From Podarcis muralis (taxonomy: Eukaryota), in contig NC_135671.1 in NCBI RefSeq assembly GCF_964188315.1, positions 39,060,001 through 39,124,000 on the forward strand: 64,000 bases of DNA, in the 5' to 3' direction. This document shows positions 10,363 through 64,000 of the stretch, piece by piece (the first letter of the stretch is position 1; each line of letters opens with the position of its first letter). Under the pieces are notes generated by a model. The model had not been told where the DNA came from. It made no database searches and saw only the letters and a list, made by a program, of their open reading frames with translations. Made by a program: the position numbers and the translations under genes.

Positions 10363-10690
10363 ACTTGTAAGCCCCTTCTCATCAGTACAAGATTTACAAA
10401 CTTGTTTCTAAAAACAAGTGATAGCAGAGACCTTCCAGAGGCTGAGTTCTGTCCCACTGCCATATGGATGCATGGATAGTATTATGGGATACATACAGCA
10501 CTTATCTCTATGTGCTCTTCCATTCCTTTTCCACTCCACTCCCAGTCCTCAACAAGGTATTCAGAATTCTGTAATCAGAGGTTTAACAAAAAGTAAATCA
10601 CACTGGTGCCATGAAGTGTGCATAATTTGTTCCAAGCAGAGAAGTTTGTGTTTCCAAGGCCCATATACAGCAAAACCAATTATGCAACTA

Positions 10691-43200: not shown

Positions 43201-45296
43201 AAGGAGTACTCAGTTAACAGGAAAGGCTAACTGATTAGATTATGATGATGATTAATTGTGGGGAGACAACCCCTATAATCCCACCACCATTCCAAAGCAT
43301 CAGAACTTTCAAGCGTCTCTCAGCCCTCATCTCAACTCCCTGTCCCAGTCTACACAGACCTCTGTCTGCCCACCCAATATTATCCTTTCTTTGCCTTCAT
43401 TCCCAAATCCCATCCCTTCTGTACACAAGGTGGAAGAAGTTACCTGCTCGGGCTGCCTGCAGGAGCTCAGGGCGCCGGAATCTTGGTACTTTTCGATACA
43501 GCCGACTGTACATCCACACCTGTTTGGGAAGGGATGGAGAGGTAACCTGGGCCCTCTAGTCTCATGGCAGACATCTGCCTTGGCTAAGCCAGGGATGAGG
43601 ACATTTGCTCACTCCAGCACTCATCAGCCCCAGCCAGCAAGGTCAGTGGTCAGGGACGATGGGAATTGGACTCCATCCATTCGTGGAGGACCACAGCTTT
43701 CCTTTCCTTGGCTTAAGCCCCAGCACTGATGTCTGCCATTCAGGGTATGGCCTGTGAGCGTGGCTCTCTGCAGGCCTGGCCTATTCTTAACCTCTAAGGA
43801 GACAGGTGCTGGACCTCAGACTTGCTTGGAAATTCCTCGTGCAAAAACTTTCCTAATATGGGGGACTGATGGGGGAGCTGCAGTGTTGAGGCATTCTGCA
43901 CATGCTCAGAGAGACTTGTGCCATTTATTTATTAAGTTTGCTTTACCTGTTCATTCCAAGCTTTAAGGCCAGCACTGAAACCAGATTCTGAGGTCAATTC
44001 TGGCAAGCCAGGTTCCAGAGAAGCTGGCCCTGCCCAGCCTCATTTCCCACACCAGCCCCAACCACACAAAGGGGATCCCAACAGAAAATCTAAAAAGGTT
44101 TCCAAAATCCATGGCCCCTGAGGACCCCTACCTGCCGGCCTTGCAGCCAAACGTATTTCAAGTCATCATAAACTTTCCCATCCTGGCCCAGACATGTAAA
44201 GAACCCCCTAGAGAGAAAGAAGAGGCAGGGGTGAGAACCAGGAGGGGGGGGGCACAATTTCCTAGAGGAAAGGATGAGAGCAGGCCGGGCAGAGAACTAC
44301 TGACTAAAGAGGAACTTGTCGTAGGGCGTGGCTGAGTGGGGCTCCCCATAGCCCCTCAGCCAGCACAACAAATGGCCTGGGAAGATGGGAGCTGGAGTCC
44401 AAGGAGTTTTGGAGATTCCCCCACCCCTGGCCTGGGAGAAGTAAGACAGGAAGCTGCCTCTGGCAGTGTCTGGAGTTAGAGCTAAAGCAGGCGCAGCAAA
44501 CGCGGAATGCCTTGAAGAAGGGCAGGCAGATCTGGTTCACAGAGCACCATTTGCCAGGACATTCTGCTCCGCAAGCCCCACGGAAATGGAAGGAGAGCAT
44601 ATCTGGGGACAGCAGCACCTTGCCCACAGCTCACATTTGTTTCCATGAAGCTTGCAGAGGAGAATTTCCCAGTGGAATGTCATCCATGCTGGTCCAAGGA
44701 GCAACAGGGAGCCCTAAGCTCCGGGTAGTTCCCTTCAAGTCATGCATGACGTCACGTGTGAGTCAGGTGGGCACAGCCTCCCGAAAATAGTGGGCTAAAT
44801 GAAAAGGGTTGCCAAGCCAGAGGTGTCCCCCCCCCCCCCCGCATTAGAGGGTAGATTTGTCTGCCTCCGGCCATGTGAGGGGAGGGGAGGGGAAGTATCT
44901 CCTTGCATCTCAGTGGTATGTTCTACCCCCCCCCCTTCCTGGGAAGGGCTCCCCTGTTTCACATACCCTCTTCCCCCTCCCCATTTGGGCCGATTTCCTT
45001 AATGGCGTGTATAGCATCCCTATAAACATAACCTTCCCCCCCGCCCCATGTCGTGAGAGGGAGTCAGTGTGGTAGGTACAGGACTGGACTGCGGGAGAGC
45101 CGTGTTCAAATGCCCCCTCAGCCACAACCCAGGCTGGCTGCCCTGGGGCGACCGGGGGGGGGCCCTAGATGAATAGACAGGCAGCGATCCATCACCCGTA
45201 TTCTTCGTCGTGCGAATGCTGAAGCCAGAAATCCACCACGGCGTCCAGCTCTCGGGAGATGCGTCCATGCCAGCTCAAGAGCGACGCCAAATCCAT
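34217..45296 (-). CDS. RENBP: N-acylglucosamine 2-epimerase (renin-binding protein), 10 coding exons, 405 aa
   Basis: Exons 45296-45196, 44207-44132, 43519-43444, 42685-42513, 41530-41306, 41214-41133, 38635-38460, 38341-38210, 37884-37797, 34305-34217; phases are continuous. Motifs [46 protein letters not shown] and KGCFHVPR match human RENBP, including the catalytic His/Glu/His positions. Confidence 0.96.
34640..34777. mobile_element. Palindromic hAT-type MITE
   Basis: Near-perfect 28-bp TIR CCAGGCTTCCTCAACCTTGGCCCTCCAG / CTGGAGGGCCAAGGCTGAGGAAGCCTGG. Confidence 0.85.
34869..35223. mobile_element. Tc1/mariner MITE, third family, with CGCAAGACG internal repeats
   Basis: TA-CAGTGGTACCTCGCAAGAC...GTCTTGCGAGGCACCACTG-TA. 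Confidence 0.88.
35390..36580 (-). mobile_element. L1-clade fragment: ORF1 C-terminus and ORF2 AP-endonuclease N-terminus, degraded
   Basis: ORF 35715-36023 reads [15 protein letters not shown]...[14 protein letters not shown]...WCLMADWN (APE motifs); upstream [21 protein letters not shown] resembles L1 ORF1. Confidence 0.75.
36590..37139 (+). mobile_element. L1-clade 3' end with A-rich tail
   Basis: Frame-broken [21 protein letters not shown]...FVKDWK-type ORF2 terminus, pyrimidine-rich 3' UTR, AATAAA and A tail. Confidence 0.7.
38864..39055 (-). mobile_element. L1-type 3' UTR/tail fragment
   Basis: T-rich terminus ttattttatttctatatc and AT-rich 3' UTR typical of reptile L1 ends. Confidence 0.45.
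41865..42115. mobile_element. CR1 3'-end fragments in two orientations
   Basis: ggcatctggttggc...ggtccgatccagaagggctcctcttccgttcttaag abuts gaggcagagcagagccatcatgg...aatttgtctaatcctcttttaaagccatc. Confidence 0.6.
42879..43127 (-). mobile_element. CORE-type tRNA SINE (Squam3-like), full length
   Basis: Head GAGAGCCAGTGTGGTGTAGTGGTTAAGAGCGG, CORE gctgggtgaccttgggccagtcac, L2-like tail and (TTC)n end. Confidence 0.85.
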
Positions 45297-46120
45297 CCTC
45301 GCTGCTTTCTCCAGCGGCGATCCCTGTAGGGGCGCGAAGGTGCTTCTGGCCCAGGATCTGACCCCGAGAGGGGAGGGGGAGTCCCGAGACGCGCTGCCAA
45401 TGTCCGCGGGAAACTAGCATAAAACCACGCACAACGCCCCCCCCCCCAAAAAAACTTTAAAATTTACAGAAGTAGGGAACTGCTGGTCAGATGATTTGCC
45501 CGAGTCACCTGACACTAGCCCCACCCTTTCTCCCACGTGGGGGGGGGGCAAGACCCTGATTTGTTCCTTTTCCTCCGTTTCCATTTGTTAACCCTACAAC
45601 TGCCGTGATCCGGCCCAGAGATCGGCAGCTGGAATCCCAGAACAGTGATCGTGACAACAAAAGGGCAGCAATGAGGCACAAAGCAGTTAAAGGCTCCCAG
45701 TAAGGCTTCCTAACTCGGGTGGCTCCCCGCTGCCTCCTGCCCCGCTGCTGAGCGGAAGGGCCGAGGGGCGACTGGGAGCCGGGACGACCCCAAACGCGGC
45801 TGCGTGATGGCACCGCTACTGGGATGCCCCGCTCCTACGTCAGGGGAGGAATCCCCCTCGGCAGCAAAAGCCCAGCCGCTGCCGCCCCGTCCCAGGCGAG
45901 CTCTGGGGGGAGGGGGCGGTGCGTGTGCTTTCCCTCGAGGTCCACGTGGTTCGCTTCAAATATGGACCATCGCAAGGTGCCGAGGCATCCAAATAATCTT
46001 GCTGCCAATCTGGGGGAGGCGGGGAGGGACCTCTTGCTCTCTCCTACTTACTTCAGAGCCGCGTTTCACAGCTGGGGGGCGACTCCATGCGAAGGAGGCC
46101 TCGCGTGTCTTTAACAATTG
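45050..46120. promoter_or_regulatory. CpG island, RENBP promoter/first coding exon
   Basis: CpG enrichment around and upstream of ATG 45296; boundaries approximate. Confidence 0.7.
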
Positions 46121-48679: not shown

Positions 48680-49640
48680 AACTATGACATGCGATTCTCC
48701 ATCACGATCCTTGCTTCGCCTGGGCACAAGCCGGACCCCACCAGCCTCCCCTGAAAACGTGTCCGGAAGGCGCAGCCCCTCGCCCTTCCTCCTCCCTGGC
48801 GCCGAGCAGCCGACGGGGAGGGCGAGAGCGAGCAGCTGCGAGGAGCTCCAAGCAGCGCCCGCCCTTCTTCGGAGCGAGTTTGAGGGAGGCTGTGCCGCGC
48901 CGAGGGGGCTCGGGGGGGGGGGGCACGGCCGGGGAGGGGCTTCGGGGCCGAGGACTGAGCAGGGAACCCCCACAAAGGTCGCGGGAATCCACGCCTGGCC
49001 GCGGGGGGGGGGGTCTCGACGGAGGCTCCCGTTCCCGAGCTGCCCCCGTAGGGCTGCCCTCACCCGCCCGTCTCTCCGCAGGTTCTGGCGCAGACGCCCC
49101 ATGTTCAGACGTTCCCACCTCAAGATCCTGCTGATCGGCAATTCCGGGTAAGCACAAGGGGCGCCTGGATGGGGAAGGCAGGCCCGCCGGGAGAGCCGGG
49201 CTCCGGCGGCTAAGCGGGTGTCGGGGCTCCAGGCGGGCGGGAAGAGGAAGGCTTCCCGGGATCCTGTCCCCGTTTGGCAGCCAAGGGGTTAAGGCGGCAG
49301 GCGGAGGGGGCGCAGGGGGCGCCGCCGCGCAGAGGCAGGGGCAGCCCGTCCAGTGCAGCCCGGGGAGAAACTTCCGCGAGGCTCTGCTGCCTCCACAACC
49401 ACCCGCCCGGTATTCTCTGTAGCTCAGGCTGGGAAGCGTGCGGCCCCCACGGCCTGGAGCGCGGCGCCCGCTTGGAGAAGTCTTCTGGATTCGCTCCCCG
49501 AGCGCCTCAGTCTCTGAGATCCCGGCGCGCTGCACGCCGCTCTCCTGTCCCACCTCCTTCCAAGTCCTTAAAGTACCTGCAGCAAGTGGGACCACGTTGC
49601 AGCTTCCCGGGCTCCGTGTGTACCAGGACAATTTTATGGG
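48680..49640. promoter_or_regulatory. CpG island, promoter of the RAB7-like gene
   Basis: CpG-dense stretch enclosing ATG 49101 and the gtaagc donor at 49148. Confidence 0.75.
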
Positions 49641-52600
49641 GCGCAGCTGAACTAGACCAGCTGTTTGTTCCCAGAATTAAAGCAGATGGAAGAGGCAACA
49701 CCAAATAACTAGAGGCCAAGTCAAGTGACTATTTTCCTATGGACGCAGTGGTATTACCATTGCCTGAACCCGGAGAGCATCGATGCAATAAAAAGGTGCT
49801 TTTTAAGAAAAGAAAAGCCTGCAACCTGTATGTTTTATGCACAACTGTGTTTTGTTCTCTTCACATTATTTTGCCATTTTAAATATGTTGCATAATTTAG
49901 ACTGCAGGAGTACAACCCTCTTGAACTCAGTGGGATTTACCTCTGAGTAGACAGGTGCAGGGTCAGGCTGCAAGTCTGCACTTGCTAGTCATGGGGAGCT
50001 AAATGGAACATGAGAACTTACTGCATTTTTATTCAGCTTCCCCTCTAGTCGAGCATGCTTGAAAAATTAGCATAACTTCACAAGTGTTAACAAAAACACC
50101 TGTACATCAAAATACTCAGAAAAATGTGCTTGCTTAACCTTCCCCTATCAACCTGACTCTGAAGAGCCTGGTAGCAGCTGTCGTTGCAACTAATTTATTA
50201 AGTAACTACAGCTTTATGGCAGTGTAGTAATAATCCTTACTGTATAATTATAATTAACACTCACTTTCAACTTTTTATAACCATTATTTAAACATTTGTT
50301 TAAATAGTGTAGTTTTTATGTATTGAGTAAAATAATTTGGTTATTTCCAATATCTGTATCTAAACTCAAAATGGGCCTTAGTATGTGTTTAAGATATTAT
50401 GAATGCACACAACTGTCCAATGCAATGAGGATTTAAGATTTCTCATTTACCTTTTATGCCAAAAAGTAAGATAGTTAGGATTAACCTTTATCTACCAAAT
50501 GTGAAGAAAAACATACAAGAAGAGAAGGGCTCAAGCACTGCCAGACACAGTGCAGGCAAAGCACTGAATATCATTTTGAAACCATGTCAGTTGTTTGATT
50601 TTTGTCCTAATCATTTCAAACACAAAGCTTTGTACAAAAGTGACAAAGTAAAAAAAGGGCACCATCAGAAAAGGCTTCTGGAGACTTTGTACATGCAATG
50701 CCAAAGCATTTTGATGCAAGATATGCTTTTGCCATTGTTTGATTTTAAGCATATTTTACCAAGATGACTTATTTTGCCTTTGGAGTTGCATCAGCCATTC
50801 CTTATGCCTTTTTCAAACCTTTGTACTCAATAGGCCAATTGAGCCTCACACAGTGCGTTTCCTACAGTAGCCAACTAGATATTCCTCGGAAGGCCACAAG
50901 CAAATCATCAGACCTTCCCATCCTGCTGCTGTGCCCCAGTGACTGCTACTCAAAAGGCCTTTGCCATCTTACCATGGGATTCCCCACTGCTGCCACCAAA
51001 AAGGATTTATCACAAGGCTGTGTGCATGTGTGCAAGAGGCAGTTCAGGAGCAGAGAACCAGCTCCACCTCTGCAGCCCTGTGCTGGTTGATGAGGCAGCG
51101 GGGTGTGGGGGAGGTTACTGACTAGACCTCCGCATTTTAAAATGTCAACCGTCCTCCGTTCCCCACAGGGCGGGCAAATCTGCCCTGATGAACCAGTATG
51201 TTAACAACCGCTTCAGCAGTCGCTACAGAGCCACCATTGGAGCAGATTTCCTCAGCAAGGAAGTAAACATTGATGGACGCAAACTGACCGTGCAGGTAGG
51301 CTCAGCAGAGGCTCCCTGTTGGGCAAAGATCGCCCCCTAAGCTCATCCCATGTTACCCATTAAAAAAACCCTGTGCTCCAGCCTAGGGCAATTTTAGCAA
51401 CATACTCCATTTCCAGCTCCCATAATCCCTAAGCCATTGGCCATGCTGGCTGAGACTGGAGGGAGCCTTAACACCACCTGGAGGCCACAAGTTCCCCACT
51501 TCAGGTCTAAAATTATCCTATATGTGCCTTATGTAGCCAGAATGGCACCCTTCGTGCACAAGATGGAGGGAGCAGTAGCAGGGATCCAATTTCTGTACAA
51601 GCACCTATTTCAGGAAAATATTTAAAGGTGTGTGTGTAAGGGAGAGAATCTAAAATGGGCAAGTGAATTGACGGTTGTGCTCAGTGGCAATTGTGGTGGC
51701 AAATAAAATACAGGAAAATGGAACAGAATATTCTAGAAAAGGGGTCCTCTGGTCCCCTCAGTATGAGCACCCCAAATCTGCTATGTTTCGTTACAAGTGC
51801 CTTGTTTTAGCTTTATTGTGGCAGCCTTAAGAGAGTCAATAAGATACAGGCATTTGTGGACTAAAGCCTATCACCATGAGACAGGCCCCGGGTGGGGTGC
51901 CACAAGCATATTACAATGTGGACTCTAGCTATTTGCTAAAAATCAGTTCTTAGTTACAGCAAACACCCTTTCCCTTCTAGAATTAATGTTAATGACAATG
52001 CTGAATTCTTATTTCCATTTTTTGCAACCCCAATTTGTACAGAAGCAATATGCACAACTAAAAGAAATGAAATTTCAATATTGCTGCAGTCCCAAATATG
52101 CAGTGGCCCAACTCTTACGAATGAACACAATTCTCCATTGGGCTGCAAGGTCAACGTGACACACCTACACTTGGCCCTTCCTGTAAGGAGCTTACCATAT
52201 GGCTTCCAAAGTGATCTTCTATCTATGCAAAAGCTTACAAAGCTAGACCAGGTTAGCCTCAAGCTGAGCAGAATTTACACCACATGTGTTCAGATCATTC
52301 TTTGGGATCATGTTATCATTTGTTCCATGCAAAGTTTTATCAATTCATAGACAATTATGATGGCCAATGCCATACCAACAGGGCAAAATTAAACACCATC
52401 CATCCAAAAAAGCAAAAGGAAAAAAAACCAAGAGCATGGCAGAAAAGGCACCTTTACAGCAAACACCCCTGATCGAAGTGCATGAACCAAGATAGGGCCC
52501 CCCACCCCCACCCCCCAAAGATCCTTTACAATGCTAGCAGCCAATTTGGCTTGAGGAAAGGCTTCCAACCCGGAAGTTAGTGTGGGAGTGTGGTGAAGCC

Positions 52601-54963
52601 TGGGACGTGGTGAGAGGGAACATGGCGCCGAGCGGGCCGGCCTCGGCTGCTAAAAGAGAAGAGAACGCCATTATCCTAATTGGAGAGAGGGCTTAAGAGG
52701 AAGACGCTGTGTGGTGTTTAAATCCTGGATAAGTCATCGTTTGTGCCCAGGCTGCTGTCATAGAGGGCTGAGAGGCCAGTGGAGCCAGGACATTTGGCAC
52801 CCTACCCCCTAGACATCTTGAGGCTGTCACATTTCAATACTTCCCCTTGTGAAAAGCTTCTGCAAACTGGGTCCGAGGTGTCCACGAAAGACTGATGCTG
52901 TAAGTGGATTTTACTGCAGTGAAGAGGAAAACTTCACTATTATTATCCATCCAAGGAGCTTTCACCCACGGTGCCATCTTCTGGTGGTCTTAACTATCTT
53001 AGTTGTGTGTTAAATGTTATGTTATTTTAAGAATCGTATAATCCTTGGCCTGAGGAAAGTATGGGTCAGAACAAACGCTTGAGAGACTTTGACGAGCTTC
53101 CAACCCATATAGCAAACTAGTCGTGTCCATGTACGTCTGCACCACGCAGATCCAAGTTCTGTGACAAAGCTGAATTCAGCAGCTTGTGTGGTTTCTCATT
53201 TTGCACAATTGTCAGTTTCCACTAATCATAGGAAGCAACACTCAACATGACAGGGCTGCAGTCCCCATCTAATTCAGTACTTTTTCTGGCTGCTGGTTTA
53301 ATCCAAGATTGCCAACTTTTATGGCAAAACAGCACATCACAGCACTCGTTTTCTGGGTGCCAGTAACAATGGACAGCTGGCACCTGAAATGTAGAAGTAT
53401 GGATCATTGTTCTGCACTCCCAGAAACGTAGCTTGGGAGATGGGGTTCAAGAAAGCTGCTCCATCTCTTTATAGCCATTTGGTATTATATACATTCTGAT
53501 GTGTAGATTAGTTGTTGGCAGAATTGTGGCAGCCACTCAACCCTGGTCAAACATGGTGGAAGAATCCAGAACATCAATTGAATAAAGAAACGGGAGACTC
53601 TAGTCCACACCGTCATATGGCATGGTATCCCCTGATGCCCCCAGACAGCAAAACCTATGCTTGCTAACCTTTGTGAGAACCAAGATTAATGGAGGTAAGT
53701 CACCAAGGACCCAGGGATGTCTTGAAATCAAGGTCTCAGCTTCTACCCCTTCTTGCACCTAGATTTGGGACACAGCTGGTACAGAAAGGTTCCAAGCACT
53801 GGGGACTGCCCTCTACCGGGGGTCAGACTGCTGCCTTCTCGTCTTCGATGTCACATCTGTCAGCTCTTTCCACGCCCTGGAGAAGTGGCACAAGCAGCTC
53901 CTGTTGCAGATTGAGCCAGAGGAAGAGCCCACTTTCCCCACTGCTGTCATTGGGAACAAGATGGACCTGGAGAACCGTGAGGTGGGGCAGAGGTGGTTTT
54001 AGGGGAGTGCCACTGGTTCACCCACACTGGCTGCCAAGCTAAGGGGGCCCTGCAACAATAGCACACAGCGGAAGGCGAGAGGCGCCACCCCCACCCTCCA
54101 GATTTTGGCATTGCACAGTGCACTGCTGAAATTTTAAAGCCCAAAGTCTGCCACTGGGCAGGGCTACATATGAAGCCAGGTGCAGGGCACAAGTCCACAT
54201 CCTGTATGGCTCTCAGACATATTGGGTTGGAGTAGCTAGGGGTCAGAACTCTTTAGGGGTTCTGTTAGGGGGCTGTAAGAACTCTTTGCAATGACTCAAG
54301 GAGATGGGGAGTGGACAGAAAGTTCAGGGAATATTGTATCCTAATGAACAGCTTCACCAGAGGACTTTGGCATAATTGTTGAGCAGAGATGTAGAATTTG
54401 GTATCTGGGGAAGAATTATATTATCTTAAAGATTTGCTCTCATTGTGTACACTAAAAAGACCACAAGCTTTTTGATTAAGAGCTGCAGATGGAATTGGGA
54501 AGAGAGCAGAGTATGCCCAAGCCCTGTTTTTCTCCAGGTGTCTTCTGAGGAAGCAGAAATGTGGAGCAAGCTTCATGAAGCCAAATACTTTGAAACCAGC
54601 GCCAAGGAAGCCACCAACGTGCAGGAGGTGTTTGAGTGGGCCATACGGGCCGTACTAAAGAATGTAAGAAACCTCATTTTCAGCCCTGCCCTTATAAGGC
54701 CCCAGACAGACCACATACCTTTGAGATTGCTTTTATCCCTGAAAAAAACACCTCTCCCAGCTTTCAACTTTCTTATAAGACAAAGTCCTTCCCAACAGCC
54801 TGCATCTCATGCCCTTTGCCCATCTGCATCAACCACTTGCCCCCTCACCACTTTTCTTTTTGTTTCACCTCAGCGGAGGGTACCGGAAGAGCCACAACCG
54901 GACTCAGTTCACCTGGAGACCAGGCCACCAGAAGGGGCAGCCAGAGAGAAGTGTAGCTGCTGA
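49101..54963 (+). CDS. RAB7A-like small GTPase (divergent Rab7-family paralogue), 5 exons, 202 aa
   Basis: Exons 49101-49147, 51169-51295, 53763-53981, 54538-54663, 54874-54963 (47/127/219/126/90 nt; same phases as RAB7A, with the 127- and 219-nt exons equal in size). G1 GNSGAGKS, effector [10 protein letters not shown]3 WDTAGT, G4 NKMD, G5 ETSAK, C-terminal CSC. Open frame throughout, CpG-island promoter, AATAAA at 55203. Confidence 0.92.
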
Positions 54964-55202
54964 TCTGACCAAATACAGATGGGAAGATTCCTTCTGTCTG
55001 AGGGGGTGGGCTCTTCATGCTCTGCAATCCCGAAGGGTGAAAGTGCAACCCCACAGAACAGCCCCAAGGACATTTGGCAAGGCTGCAGCACACAGCTTCT
55101 GGAGCTGGATCCCAAGGTAGACCTTTGTTCTCTGGATGACACAGCCTAGCGCACTTGGGAGAGCTGGATCATATCCCAGGCTACTCTTCCCAAGCACATG
55201 GA

Positions 55203-55208
55203 AATAAA
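55203..55208 (+). terminator. Polyadenylation signal of the RAB7-like gene
   Basis: AATAAA 240 nt after TGA at 54963, followed by T/GT-rich sequence. Confidence 0.65.
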
Positions 55209-55381
55209 GCTGAATACCAATATTGTGCTTTTCAATGGTGAAAACACTTGTGTCCCAGCCCTCCCACGAGGGTAAGAGGGCTCTTCTCCCAAAAGGTAGC
55301 CAGAAACTCCCTAGTACGAGAAGAGGATGAGGGAAAGATCTAGTTTCACAGACAGAACCTGGTTTCCAAAAAAAGGAGGTC

Positions 55382-55387: not shown

Positions 55388-56802
55388 TGTTCAAAATAGC
55401 ACAAAAACGACAGATACGCAGCACTAGGGTGAGGGGGAGCGGCGGGGTGGACAGCCATGGGGAACTCCTAGGAGGACTGTTCCTGTCTCAAAGGAAAATA
55501 AATGGGGTAGGAGAATAGGGTAGGAAGAATCTTAGGGTCTGAACAGGAAGGGGACACAGCGAAATACATTATAATACAAAAGACCAGGGCACAGAGCAAG
55601 TTGATGGGGAAGGGGGTCTGCTCCTGGGTTTGTTTGCTATTTTTTGGAGGGGGCCTGCTTTACCTGCCAAATCTCTTTGACAATGGAGAGGTAGGACATA
55701 GCAGTCAGTGCAGCTGTTTGCATTTCATTTTATAGCCTATTCCCCACCATCTCTGAAGAATAAGCCCTGACTGCTCTTCTCCCTTCCCCTCTGTGGAATG
55801 TACAGAGAGGCAGCGAGTGGAGGGGGTGTACATATTCCTCTGGAGTGGGAGGGAACCTAGATCCCTACCCCAGCCAGAGGGAAAGCTGTACTTCAACAGG
55901 CAAAAGTATTGTCCCGCAGTCTTGTTCCTAGCTTATCACCCTGACCTTGTGGGGTCAGACTCCATCCCTCCAAAATGTCTCCCCCTCCCCCCTAAAAAAG
56001 GGTTTTATATAAAACGATGGAGAGGAATGGCAAGGCATTTTTGCCTAGACATGCCGCCTTGTGGTCTGGAGAGGGAAGAGCAGAGGGAAAAATCAGCTTG
56101 TGCTGTTAGAGGAATTGCTGCATGTGTAGAGAAGAGGGGGGTGGGTTGAAGCCACAAGCGCCCTGGGCTCAGCATCTGAACAGCTGTTGTAGAATGAGCT
56201 GCATCCCCCCACCCACCCCCAAAAGTAGCTGCATTGGTGGTCCAACCACCTCCCGCCCCTCCCTCCCCAAACAGCCCCTCCCTCCCTCTCTCTCCGTTAC
56301 CAACGCAGACACTAAAAACTAAACTGAGGGAGAGGGTCTGTACAGAGGCAAGAAATGGAGGCAGGGAGAGTAACCCTCCCACCCCCAAGACACAGGATGC
56401 TGGGGTATACAAAAAGAACTTCATTCCTGTAACTGCAACTTGTAAAAAACCCAACAGCCCCCCTCCCCCCATAACAATTCCCCCCTCCAAACCCACCCCT
56501 AACATCAGCGTCCATGTTAAACGGGGCAGCAGCAGGGGGCAGGGGAGGAACTCCAGTCCTTCTCCCCCCTCCCTAGGCTGGGGCATGGCATGGCATAGCA
56601 TGGCATGGCACAGCGATGGCCCCTGCTTGGGGCTCCCTCACTTGAGCCTCTGCGTCCTCCGCCCCAAGAGTCCAGCCCCGTGGTGTGTGAAATGTGCTTT
56701 CAGCGGTTCCATCTTCCTCCACACAGAGGGGCGGCTGACTGGCTGGGGGTTCAGGTGGAGGCTGTGGAGCAGGCAGGAAGAGGGGAGAGCAGGGGATGCC
56801 CT

Positions 56803-63813
<7,011 letters not shown>

Positions 63814-64000
63814 CTAGATGCTGGGGATGCTGGACTTGGCATCAGAAGGCTGGGCGATGGAAAGGCAAACTTGGCATCATCTTTGGAGAGCTACTTTACT
63901 GAGTCTGTCTCTGCCTCACAAGGTTTGCTAGCAGCTTTTAGGCAACTTGCAACATTAAGGCAGAATTGCTTATGCTGGATCAGACTGAAGGTCCATCTGG

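Follow-up and report, generated by a model that had tools for sequence, protein, structure and literature searches.

The window analysed here is a 64,000-nucleotide stretch of the Podarcis muralis genome (contig NC_135671.1, positions 39,060,001 to 39,124,000, forward strand), and all coordinates given below are window positions. At 49101-54963, on the plus strand, it contains a gene for a Rab7-type GTPase that is very probably the lacertid orthologue of Rab7c, an ancient Rab7a paralogue found across jawed vertebrates, and that encodes a prenylated GTPase for which a mechanism is proposed. Shown directly are the structure of the gene, its splicing and expression, the purifying selection on it, its orthology, its synteny and a set of invariant substitutions. 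The name Rab7c was introduced by Mackiewicz and Wyroba in 2009 (BMC Evol Biol 9:101, PMC2693434) from a zebrafish and X. tropicalis pair (Danio NP_001013496.1 and Xenopus tropicalis NP_989167.1), described in that paper as well-supported, divergent, sharing synteny and carrying His where other Rab7 proteins have Leu8, and assumed there to have been lost in amniotes. The lizard gene is a new amniote member of this family, and the initial annotation of the window has to be corrected in that the family already had a name. Earlier reports appear to be lacking on three points, namely that amniotes (squamates, monotremes, xenarthrans and afrotherians) have kept the gene, that its Rap-like Thr is invariant and that it is linked to HCFC1; in the passages of the 2009 paper available to us neither the Gln-to-Thr change nor the HCFC1 adjacency is named.

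Orthology and phylogeny of Rab7c

The in-frame open stretch 54430-54960 was used as the first query, and full-length searches were carried out with orthologues of the window protein. The open stretch retrieved squamate proteins named 'Rab-7a-like', and a search with coding exon 3 against a representative library gave mostly Rab7 fragments and no outgroups. Two tiers were found in the profile search, the first consisting of squamate proteins 74-100% identical to the Pogona query and the second, at 49-64% identity, of proteins from amphibians, echidna, bichir, gar, paddlefish, teleosts, sharks and rays, with true Rab7a coming next at about 48%. In the maximum-likelihood tree the 49 Rab7c proteins formed one clade (support 100/100, stem 0.44), which includes sharks, ray-finned fishes, amphibians, squamates and mammals and which branches internally in the order of the species tree; the window protein is placed beside that of Zootoca (97% identity). 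When further mammals were added, the clade comprised 53 rows and its support was again 100/100. The published X. tropicalis Rab7c, NP_989167.1 (P0292), shares a 90% cluster with the clade member P0045, and the window protein carries the diagnostic His, SHLKILL being aligned to VLLKVII at RAB7A Leu8. Likeness to the published Rab7c consists of the same orthologous clade, the His for RAB7A Leu8, separation from vertebrate Rab7a and a synteny of its own; the difference is that two anamniote sequences were known then, to which squamates, monotremes, xenarthrans and afrotherians are now added.

The NCBI names 'ras-related protein Rab-7a' (P0004 and P0003 are named 'Rab-7a') imply that the window gene is the squamate RAB7A orthologue, and RAB7A is indeed the top solved and Swiss-Prot match, at 48-49% identity, with the same intron positions in a Rab7a-type gene. 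This is, however, extremely improbable. Pogona, Anolis, Python, Scyliorhinus, Bufo and Lithobates each have a 207-residue RAB7A on record in addition to Rab7c, which refutes this reading for squamates in general, and the presence of a canonical RAB7A beside the second gene in the same species makes the window gene a paralogue of RAB7A. The Rab7c and Rab7a clades are split at 100/100, and HCFC1 is the neighbour of Rab7c in the species examined, as is RENBP in the amniotes examined. The window gene also lacks GDSGVGKT, K38 and Q67, which are strictly conserved in Rab7, while the squamate RAB7A proteins (P0272, P0282) are nearly identical to the rat protein in the tree. A third Rab7-type gene distinct from RAB7A, as the initial annotation had claimed, is therefore upheld by the separate 207-residue RAB7A in Pogona, Anolis and Python and by the division of the clades.

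The initial annotation had also placed the protein closer to RAB7A than to RAB7B, in agreement with the structural searches. The best solved relatives were RAB7A (217 bits), followed by RAB9A (189 bits) and Ypt7, and the best 30 structural matches in Swiss-Prot were all Rab7 or Rab7a (48-49% identity at the top), mammalian RAB7B not being among them. The AlphaFold2 model has a Rab fold (mean confidence score pLDDT 78, with 92 residues at 90 or above) and a template-modelling (TM) score of 0.75-0.80 to Rab7 models; Pfam Ras PF00071 matches the Rab7c orthologues, and a CXC C-terminus is kept across nearly the whole clade.

A diverged orthologue of mammalian-type RAB7B is another reading, which agrees with the UniRef label 'Ras-related protein Rab-7b' on several clade members and draws on trees from which RAB7B is missing. 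Mammalian RAB7B resembles Rab7c in being a divergent vertebrate Rab7 paralogue missing from some lineages, and it is set apart here by a published table and by its different chromosomal neighbourhood. The reading is nevertheless highly unlikely, given that plant and fungal Rab7 are among the best 30 structural matches and RAB7B is not, and that the eutherian Rab7c genes lie in the RENBP-HCFC1 interval and not at the RAB7B locus, which in human is 1q32. The literature evidence is a table in PMC2693434, which gives Rab7a, Rab7b (NP_001096381.1) and Rab7c (NP_989167.1) side by side in X. tropicalis as separate genes, each clade with its own synteny. On account of this separate Rab7b, the automatic UniProt label 'Rab-7b' on members of the Rab7c clade is a misnomer. 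Zebrafish rab7ba/rab7bb were also considered as Rab7c and rejected, being 88% identical to rab7a and of Rab7a type.

Database names for the same gene vary (Rab-7a, Rab-7a-like, rab7, rab7-like, Rab-7b, LOC), and in Pogona both Rab7c and the true RAB7A are labelled 'Rab-7a'; such automatic names hide Rab7c and mislead orthology tables. No functional paper on Rab7c was found, literature searches that included the WDTAGTERF motif and the accession numbers giving nothing; no vertebrate Rab7c paper besides that of 2009 was found either, most text matches to 'Rab7c' being 'Rab7CA' constructs or plant or amoeba genes, and the recent zebrafish and Xenopus rab7 studies found do not mention Rab7c. The expectation of a generically annotated and functionally unstudied gene was borne out by the labels 'Rab-7a-like', 'Rab-7a' or 'LOC...' and by these searches.

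Gene structure and transcription

The coding sequence of Rab7c (609 nt) is spliced from five coding exons, with GT..AG borders at every coding intron, and encodes 202 amino acids ending in CSC. Its first part is 49101-49147 and its last 54874-54963. The exons are the following:

45640..45699, plus strand: 3'-terminal part of the upstream 5' exon, joined by splicing to 49082, with an ATG in frame at 45671; GT after 45699.
49082..49147, plus strand: exon of the conserved ATG, with coding sequence from 49101 and the first half of the P-loop; acceptor AG 49080-49081, donor 49148.
51169..51295, plus strand: coding exon 2, with the second half of the P-loop (GKS) and switch I residues F31, Y35, R36 and T38; 16 and 11 reads at its two junctions.
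53763..53981, plus strand: coding exon 3, with interswitch, DTAG, switch II and NKxD; 11 and 20 junction reads.
54538..54663, plus strand: coding exon 4, with G5 ETSAK; 20 and 13 junction reads.
54874..55225 (end approximate), plus strand: last exon, with the hypervariable tail, CSC, stop codon 54961-54963, 3' untranslated region and AATAAA at 55203-55208.

The G boxes of the window protein are complete (G1 GNSGAGKS, G2 switch I Thr T38, G3 DTAG, G4 GNKMD, G5 ETSAK), and the AATAAA at 55203 lies 240 nt beyond the stop. Intron positions and phases (2, 0, 0, 0) are those of a killifish Rab7a-type gene, so the RAB7A-type phases noted initially stand. Coding exon sizes are 47/127/219/126/90 in the window and in other squamates, 47/127/219/126/81 in Xenopus, 53/127/219/126/93 in gar and 53/127/219/126/81 in anteater, being conserved in Rab7c from gar to anteater, versus 53/127/219/129/96 in the killifish Rab7a-type gene.

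Splicing of the gene was observed in RNA runs of the same organism, in which its 3' exon is present. In a stranded run searched over 49060-55059, the coding junctions 1 to 4 were covered by 16, 11, 20 and 13 raw reads lying exactly on the modelled borders, with a strand pattern that fits plus-strand RNA; junction 49146/51168 is covered by the 16 raw reads and by three contigs. One assembled RNA contig of 1035 nt joins all five coding exons, and RNA contigs extend 144 nt beyond 55059. Fourteen raw reads have about 60 loose letters ahead of 49082, whose consensus equals 45670-45699 with one mismatch and without chance matches. In these reads the 49082 exon is spliced to an exon whose last base is 45699, which brings the gene to six exons or more and gives it a first intron of 3.4 kb. 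Most Rab7c transcripts start upstream and not in the CpG island at the ATG, the main promoter being located at the upstream non-coding exon, about 350 bp from the first RENBP coding exon.

All the elements first annotated here, namely a complete 202-residue, five-exon reading frame with G boxes, CSC, CpG island and polyadenylation signal, were confirmed in the window sequence, and the predicted spliced expression is supported by RNA sequencing for all four coding introns. The gene structure needed one amendment: the five coding exons were right, but at least one further 5' non-coding exon exists and the main start is not in the CpG island. A processed pseudogene or retrocopy was ruled out by the four coding introns, the intron in the 5' untranslated region and the ratio of nonsynonymous to synonymous substitution rates (dN/dS) of about 0.1.

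Several side observations were made on the transcripts and the frame. The first query, 54430-54960, is a single open frame of 177 codons made of coding exon 4, a 210-nt intron and exon 5. The Logan contig P0001 keeps this intron with the frame open, but among raw reads splicing of it predominates. An insert of 19 residues, derived from the open stretch 5' of exon 4 by use of an alternative acceptor, is present in P. lilfordi isoform X1 (P0002). A conserved N-terminal extension from the ATG at 45671 was considered and rejected, this ATG being destroyed by a deletion in P. lilfordi; Pogona isoform X1 likewise begins MRH...

Purifying selection

Coding sequences for the dN/dS analysis were recovered exactly from the orthologous loci. 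Among the window, Pogona, Varanus and Gekko, pairwise dN/dS was 0.09-0.11 overall; the G domain taken separately gave 0.07-0.10, and the tail 0.14-0.31. Platypus versus anteater gave about 0.24 with dS near saturation, and no ratio is given against Xenopus, where dS is saturated. The constraint check called for by the initial annotation therefore returned 0.09-0.11 in squamates, and not about 1.

These values bear on whether the gene is a decaying or non-functional duplicate, that is, a transcribed pseudogene in which the lost Gln means lost function. The missing catalytic Gln would agree with this, and so would the eutherian copies with their long stem (0.63) and odd changes in conserved motifs; moreover, Rab7c is not known among the human Rabs. 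Decay is nonetheless very doubtful. From gar to anteater the reading frame is unbroken and divided among the same five coding exons, splicing of the mRNA is correct, and squamates give a dN/dS of about 0.1, platypus versus anteater one of about 0.24. All of the 49 non-eutherian members, sharks and echidna included, have Thr in place of the Gln, and this invariance indicates that Thr is selected for and that the gene is not decaying.

Distribution and eutherian copies

The initial annotation had described a gene kept in squamates and lost in eutherians. The first part is too narrow for a gene found across jawed vertebrates, and the second is wrong as stated, with intact Tamandua, armadillo, elephant and manatee copies falling in the same clade, although human may have lost the gene. 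A search with the echidna protein added the eutherians Tamandua, Dasypus and Loxodonta, with Elephas and Trichechus in the elephant cluster, and platypus and echidna also have an intact Rab7c. The anteater, armadillo, elephant and manatee proteins (P0344, P0345, P0401 and P0405) are full-length, and in Tamandua an intact five-exon Rab7c lies exactly between RENBP and HCFC1. Within the Rab7c clade the eutherian copies are joined to echidna (100/98), their own stem being long (0.63); eutherian Rab7c is fast-evolving, which may reflect relaxed constraint or a new role. Among the matches listed (two lists of 120) there was no marsupial, boreoeutherian, bird, turtle or crocodilian protein, which is suggestive of absence in these groups.

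Motif oddities were noted in the eutherian proteins: the second P-loop Gly is Arg in armadillo, anteater has DAAG and SAR, and in elephant the catalytic residue is Ala. An insert of 16 residues inside the P-loop, from an acceptor 48 nt upstream, occurs in the platypus protein as annotated (platypus locus 10501-10675) and in echidna isoform X2; the canonical P-loop acceptor is intact in platypus and is used by echidna isoform X3.

Active-site substitutions

In all 49 non-eutherian Rab7c proteins the motifs GN[SA]GxGKS (a few with D, S or H for N) and WDTAGTERF were found, whereas all Rab7/Rab7a proteins compared, from alga to frog, have WDTAGQERF and nearly all GDSGVGKT (one arthropod and one unnamed sequence have N for D). 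Thr65 of the window protein (codon ACA, 53781-53783) aligns to RAB7A Gln67, and the catalytic Gln of switch II, which most but not all Rabs have, is absent. Seven sites are conserved at 85% or more within each clade and yet differ between them (RAB7A numbering: I13L, D16N, T22S, K32R, K38R, Q67T and F77L), and each of them belongs to the P-loop or to a switch, with D16N and T22S in the P-loop, K38R in switch I, and Q67T and F77L in switch II. Arg takes the place of K38, the exchange-factor lysine, in 91% of the Rab7c members, and the equivalents of RAB7A F33 and Y37 are kept. The Ser72 position, which is Ser in at least 90% of the aligned sequences, is Ala in the window lizard and in several other squamates.

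RAB7A, the master switch of late endosomes and lysosomes, which is mutated in Charcot-Marie-Tooth 2B, shares with Rab7c the fold, intron positions and phases, 48-49% identity, the CXC tail, the CC pair after switch II and F33/Y37. It differs from it by six of these substitutions (D16N, T22S, K32R, K38R, Q67T and F77L), the His for Leu8, an unrelated hypervariable tail and, in the window lizard, the Ala at Ser72, and it is present as a separate gene.

Proposed mechanism

Rab7c would be loaded with GTP by a tri-longin exchange factor of the Mon1-Ccz1 or BLOC-3 type, which is proposed because the F-x3-Y-basic motif of switch I, on which such factors act, is kept, with Arg as in Rab32/38. During exchange by Mon1-Ccz1, K38 of Ypt7/Rab7 serves as the catalytic lysine, which Mon1-Ccz1 pushes into the nucleotide pocket, and Rab32/38 carry Arg at this position (PMC5216073, PMC12383261). 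Rab32 and Rab38, which are BLOC-3 substrates, resemble Rab7c in this Arg and belong to a different subfamily, sequence searches grouping Rab7c with Rab7. Intrinsic GTP hydrolysis would be very slow, as in Rap1, where Thr at the same position replaces Ras Gln61, a residue crucial for GTPase activity (PMC2265111). With such slow hydrolysis of its own, the protein would be switched off only by a GTPase-activating protein (GAP) giving catalytic residues in trans. The likeness to Rap1, which belongs to the Ras family and not to the Rabs, is a single convergent residue; Rap GAPs work with an Asn thumb, and their action on Rab7c is unsupported. Rab7c would act on endolysosomal membranes, with an effector set made different from that of RAB7A by the changed Leu8, F77 and tail. 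Argued from such analogies, the mechanism as a whole (tri-longin loading, very slow hydrolysis, trans-acting GAP and altered effectors) has about even chances of being right, and GTPase kinetics, exchange factor, GAP, localisation and effectors are to be read as predictions.

Several points weigh against the interpretation of the locus as a lacertid Rab7c with this mechanism. The trees contain no mammalian-type RAB7B sequences, and the separate RAB7A is documented in other squamates and not in the window's own genome. The in-frame ATG at 45671-45673, with a purine at -3, could add 16 N-terminal residues in the window species. Tissues are given as codes in the RNA runs. Every functional step is argued by analogy. 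TBC-type Rab GAPs, finally, supply their own Gln, and Thr65 need not mean a constitutively active protein.

The last point leads to a reading in which Rab7c is functional and the Thr is irrelevant to its cycling, the protein following a normal TBC GAP cycle and duplicating the role of RAB7A in some tissues. TBC GAPs are reported to provide Arg and Gln fingers in trans (Pan et al. 2006), and Rab7c has preserved switch I, the prenyl tail and the palmitoylatable CC pair. However, at seven residues of the active site or switches the whole clade is fixed for a state other than that of Rab7a, the RILP-binding regions of RAB7A differ in Rab7c (N-terminal Leu8 to His, and C-terminal), and long retention beside an almost invariant RAB7A argues for a distinct role, so that we consider simple duplication of RAB7A a minority possibility, though a serious one.

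A stronger form of the proposed mechanism is put forward only tentatively. Rab7c might be a naturally GTPase-deficient, 'locked-on' endolysosomal Rab, with its off-switch resting wholly on a dedicated GAP, membrane extraction or turnover, and its repeated loss might mark a dispensable ancient branch of lysosomal traffic co-regulated with RENBP. If this were true, the losses in human and other boreoeutherians, and apparently in marsupials, birds, turtles and crocodilians, would mark that branch as dispensable, and Rab7c would be the Rab-family counterpart of Rap, with a sugar-salvage gene, RENBP, as its neighbour.

A further and apparently unstudied Rab7 paralogue, whose active site is Rap-like, is present in lizards, monotremes and some placental mammals and constitutes a natural experiment on a Rab7 without the catalytic glutamine. 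Work in zebrafish and Xenopus takes rab7a and rab7b as the whole family, yet these animals carry a constrained Rab7c, which could compensate in fish or frog rab7 knockouts.

Genomic neighbourhood and origin

The following neighbouring features were located in the window:

45201..45296, minus strand: first coding exon of RENBP, head-to-head with Rab7c; translates to a 32-residue N-terminus.
45476..45563, no strand: conserved, putative promoter block between the first exons of RENBP and Rab7c, found by blastn, with the E-box-like sites GTCACCTGAC and CACGTG.
48801..49600, no strand: CpG island around the ATG exon (GC 66-74%, observed/expected CpG 0.72-0.86).
55500..64000, minus strand: 3' part of HCFC1, tail-to-tail with Rab7c and continuing beyond the window; the 2203-residue Kelch_HCF gene of P. 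lilfordi maps here.

The Pfam scan of the raw window reading frames gave only weak RENBP and fn3 hints, and the identities of the neighbours were taken from annotated orthologous loci. The orthologous locus of P. lilfordi, 91-97% identical to the window, has RENBP (GlcNAc 2-epimerase, minus strand) upstream and the 2203-residue Kelch_HCF gene HCFC1 (minus strand) downstream, and its alignment to the window bears out the initial placement between RENBP and HCFC1. In P. lilfordi the GlcNAc_2-epim (RENBP) gene begins at a point that corresponds to about 45315 of the window, and the upstream Rab7c exon is on the opposite strand, so the two genes are head-to-head. Window reading frames 59721-60392 and 60151-60480 have 82-98% protein identity to the downstream gene of gar, Pogona, Varanus, Gekko and platypus.

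The order RENBP(-), Rab7c(+), HCFC1(-) was found in P. lilfordi, Pogona, Varanus, platypus and Tamandua, with NAA10 beyond RENBP in the last species. In Xenopus a LEM-domain gene, Rab7c and HCFC1 follow in order, and in gar a kinase gene, Rab7c and a 2179-residue gene whose exons have 82-88% protein identity to the window HCFC1 exons. The proposed synteny check in Xenopus, gar and platypus therefore found HCFC1 adjoining Rab7c in all three, and RENBP also in platypus. HCFC1 lies tail-to-tail downstream of Rab7c in gar, Xenopus, four squamates, platypus and anteater, and with the pairing extending from gar to mammals this arrangement dates back at least to the origin of bony vertebrates. In Xenopus laevis the upstream neighbour of Rab7c, the LEM-domain gene and not RENBP, may be emerin, another human Xq28 gene, and the RENBP adjacency may accordingly be an amniote arrangement. 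RENBP and HCFC1 themselves are adjacent in human.

Rab7c most likely arose in the early vertebrate genome duplications. RAB7A (3q21), RAB7B (1q32) and the Xq28-type site of Rab7c lie near PLXNA1, PLXNA2 and PLXNA3, which would fit an origin in two early genome duplications. Such an origin is also proposed by Mackiewicz and Wyroba 2009 (PMC2693434).

Block 45476-45563 is 81% identical to Pogona, and a Varanus match at 45470-45648 (72%) includes it; it is possibly a shared bidirectional promoter element. Its GTCACCTGAC site is one base off the lysosomal CLEAR consensus. The CpG island may serve a second start, because one RNA contig reads through 49060-49081 unspliced, and it may thus be an alternative promoter.

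An insertion of 524 bp (52572-53095), with an 11-bp flanking direct repeat, GCTTCCAACCC, was noted in the intron between coding exons 2 and 3. It is missing in P. lilfordi and also in one RNA contig from the same organism, where 52560 is joined to 53096 and 11 letters can be assigned to either side, and it is likely a polymorphic mobile-element insertion with no part in Rab7c function.

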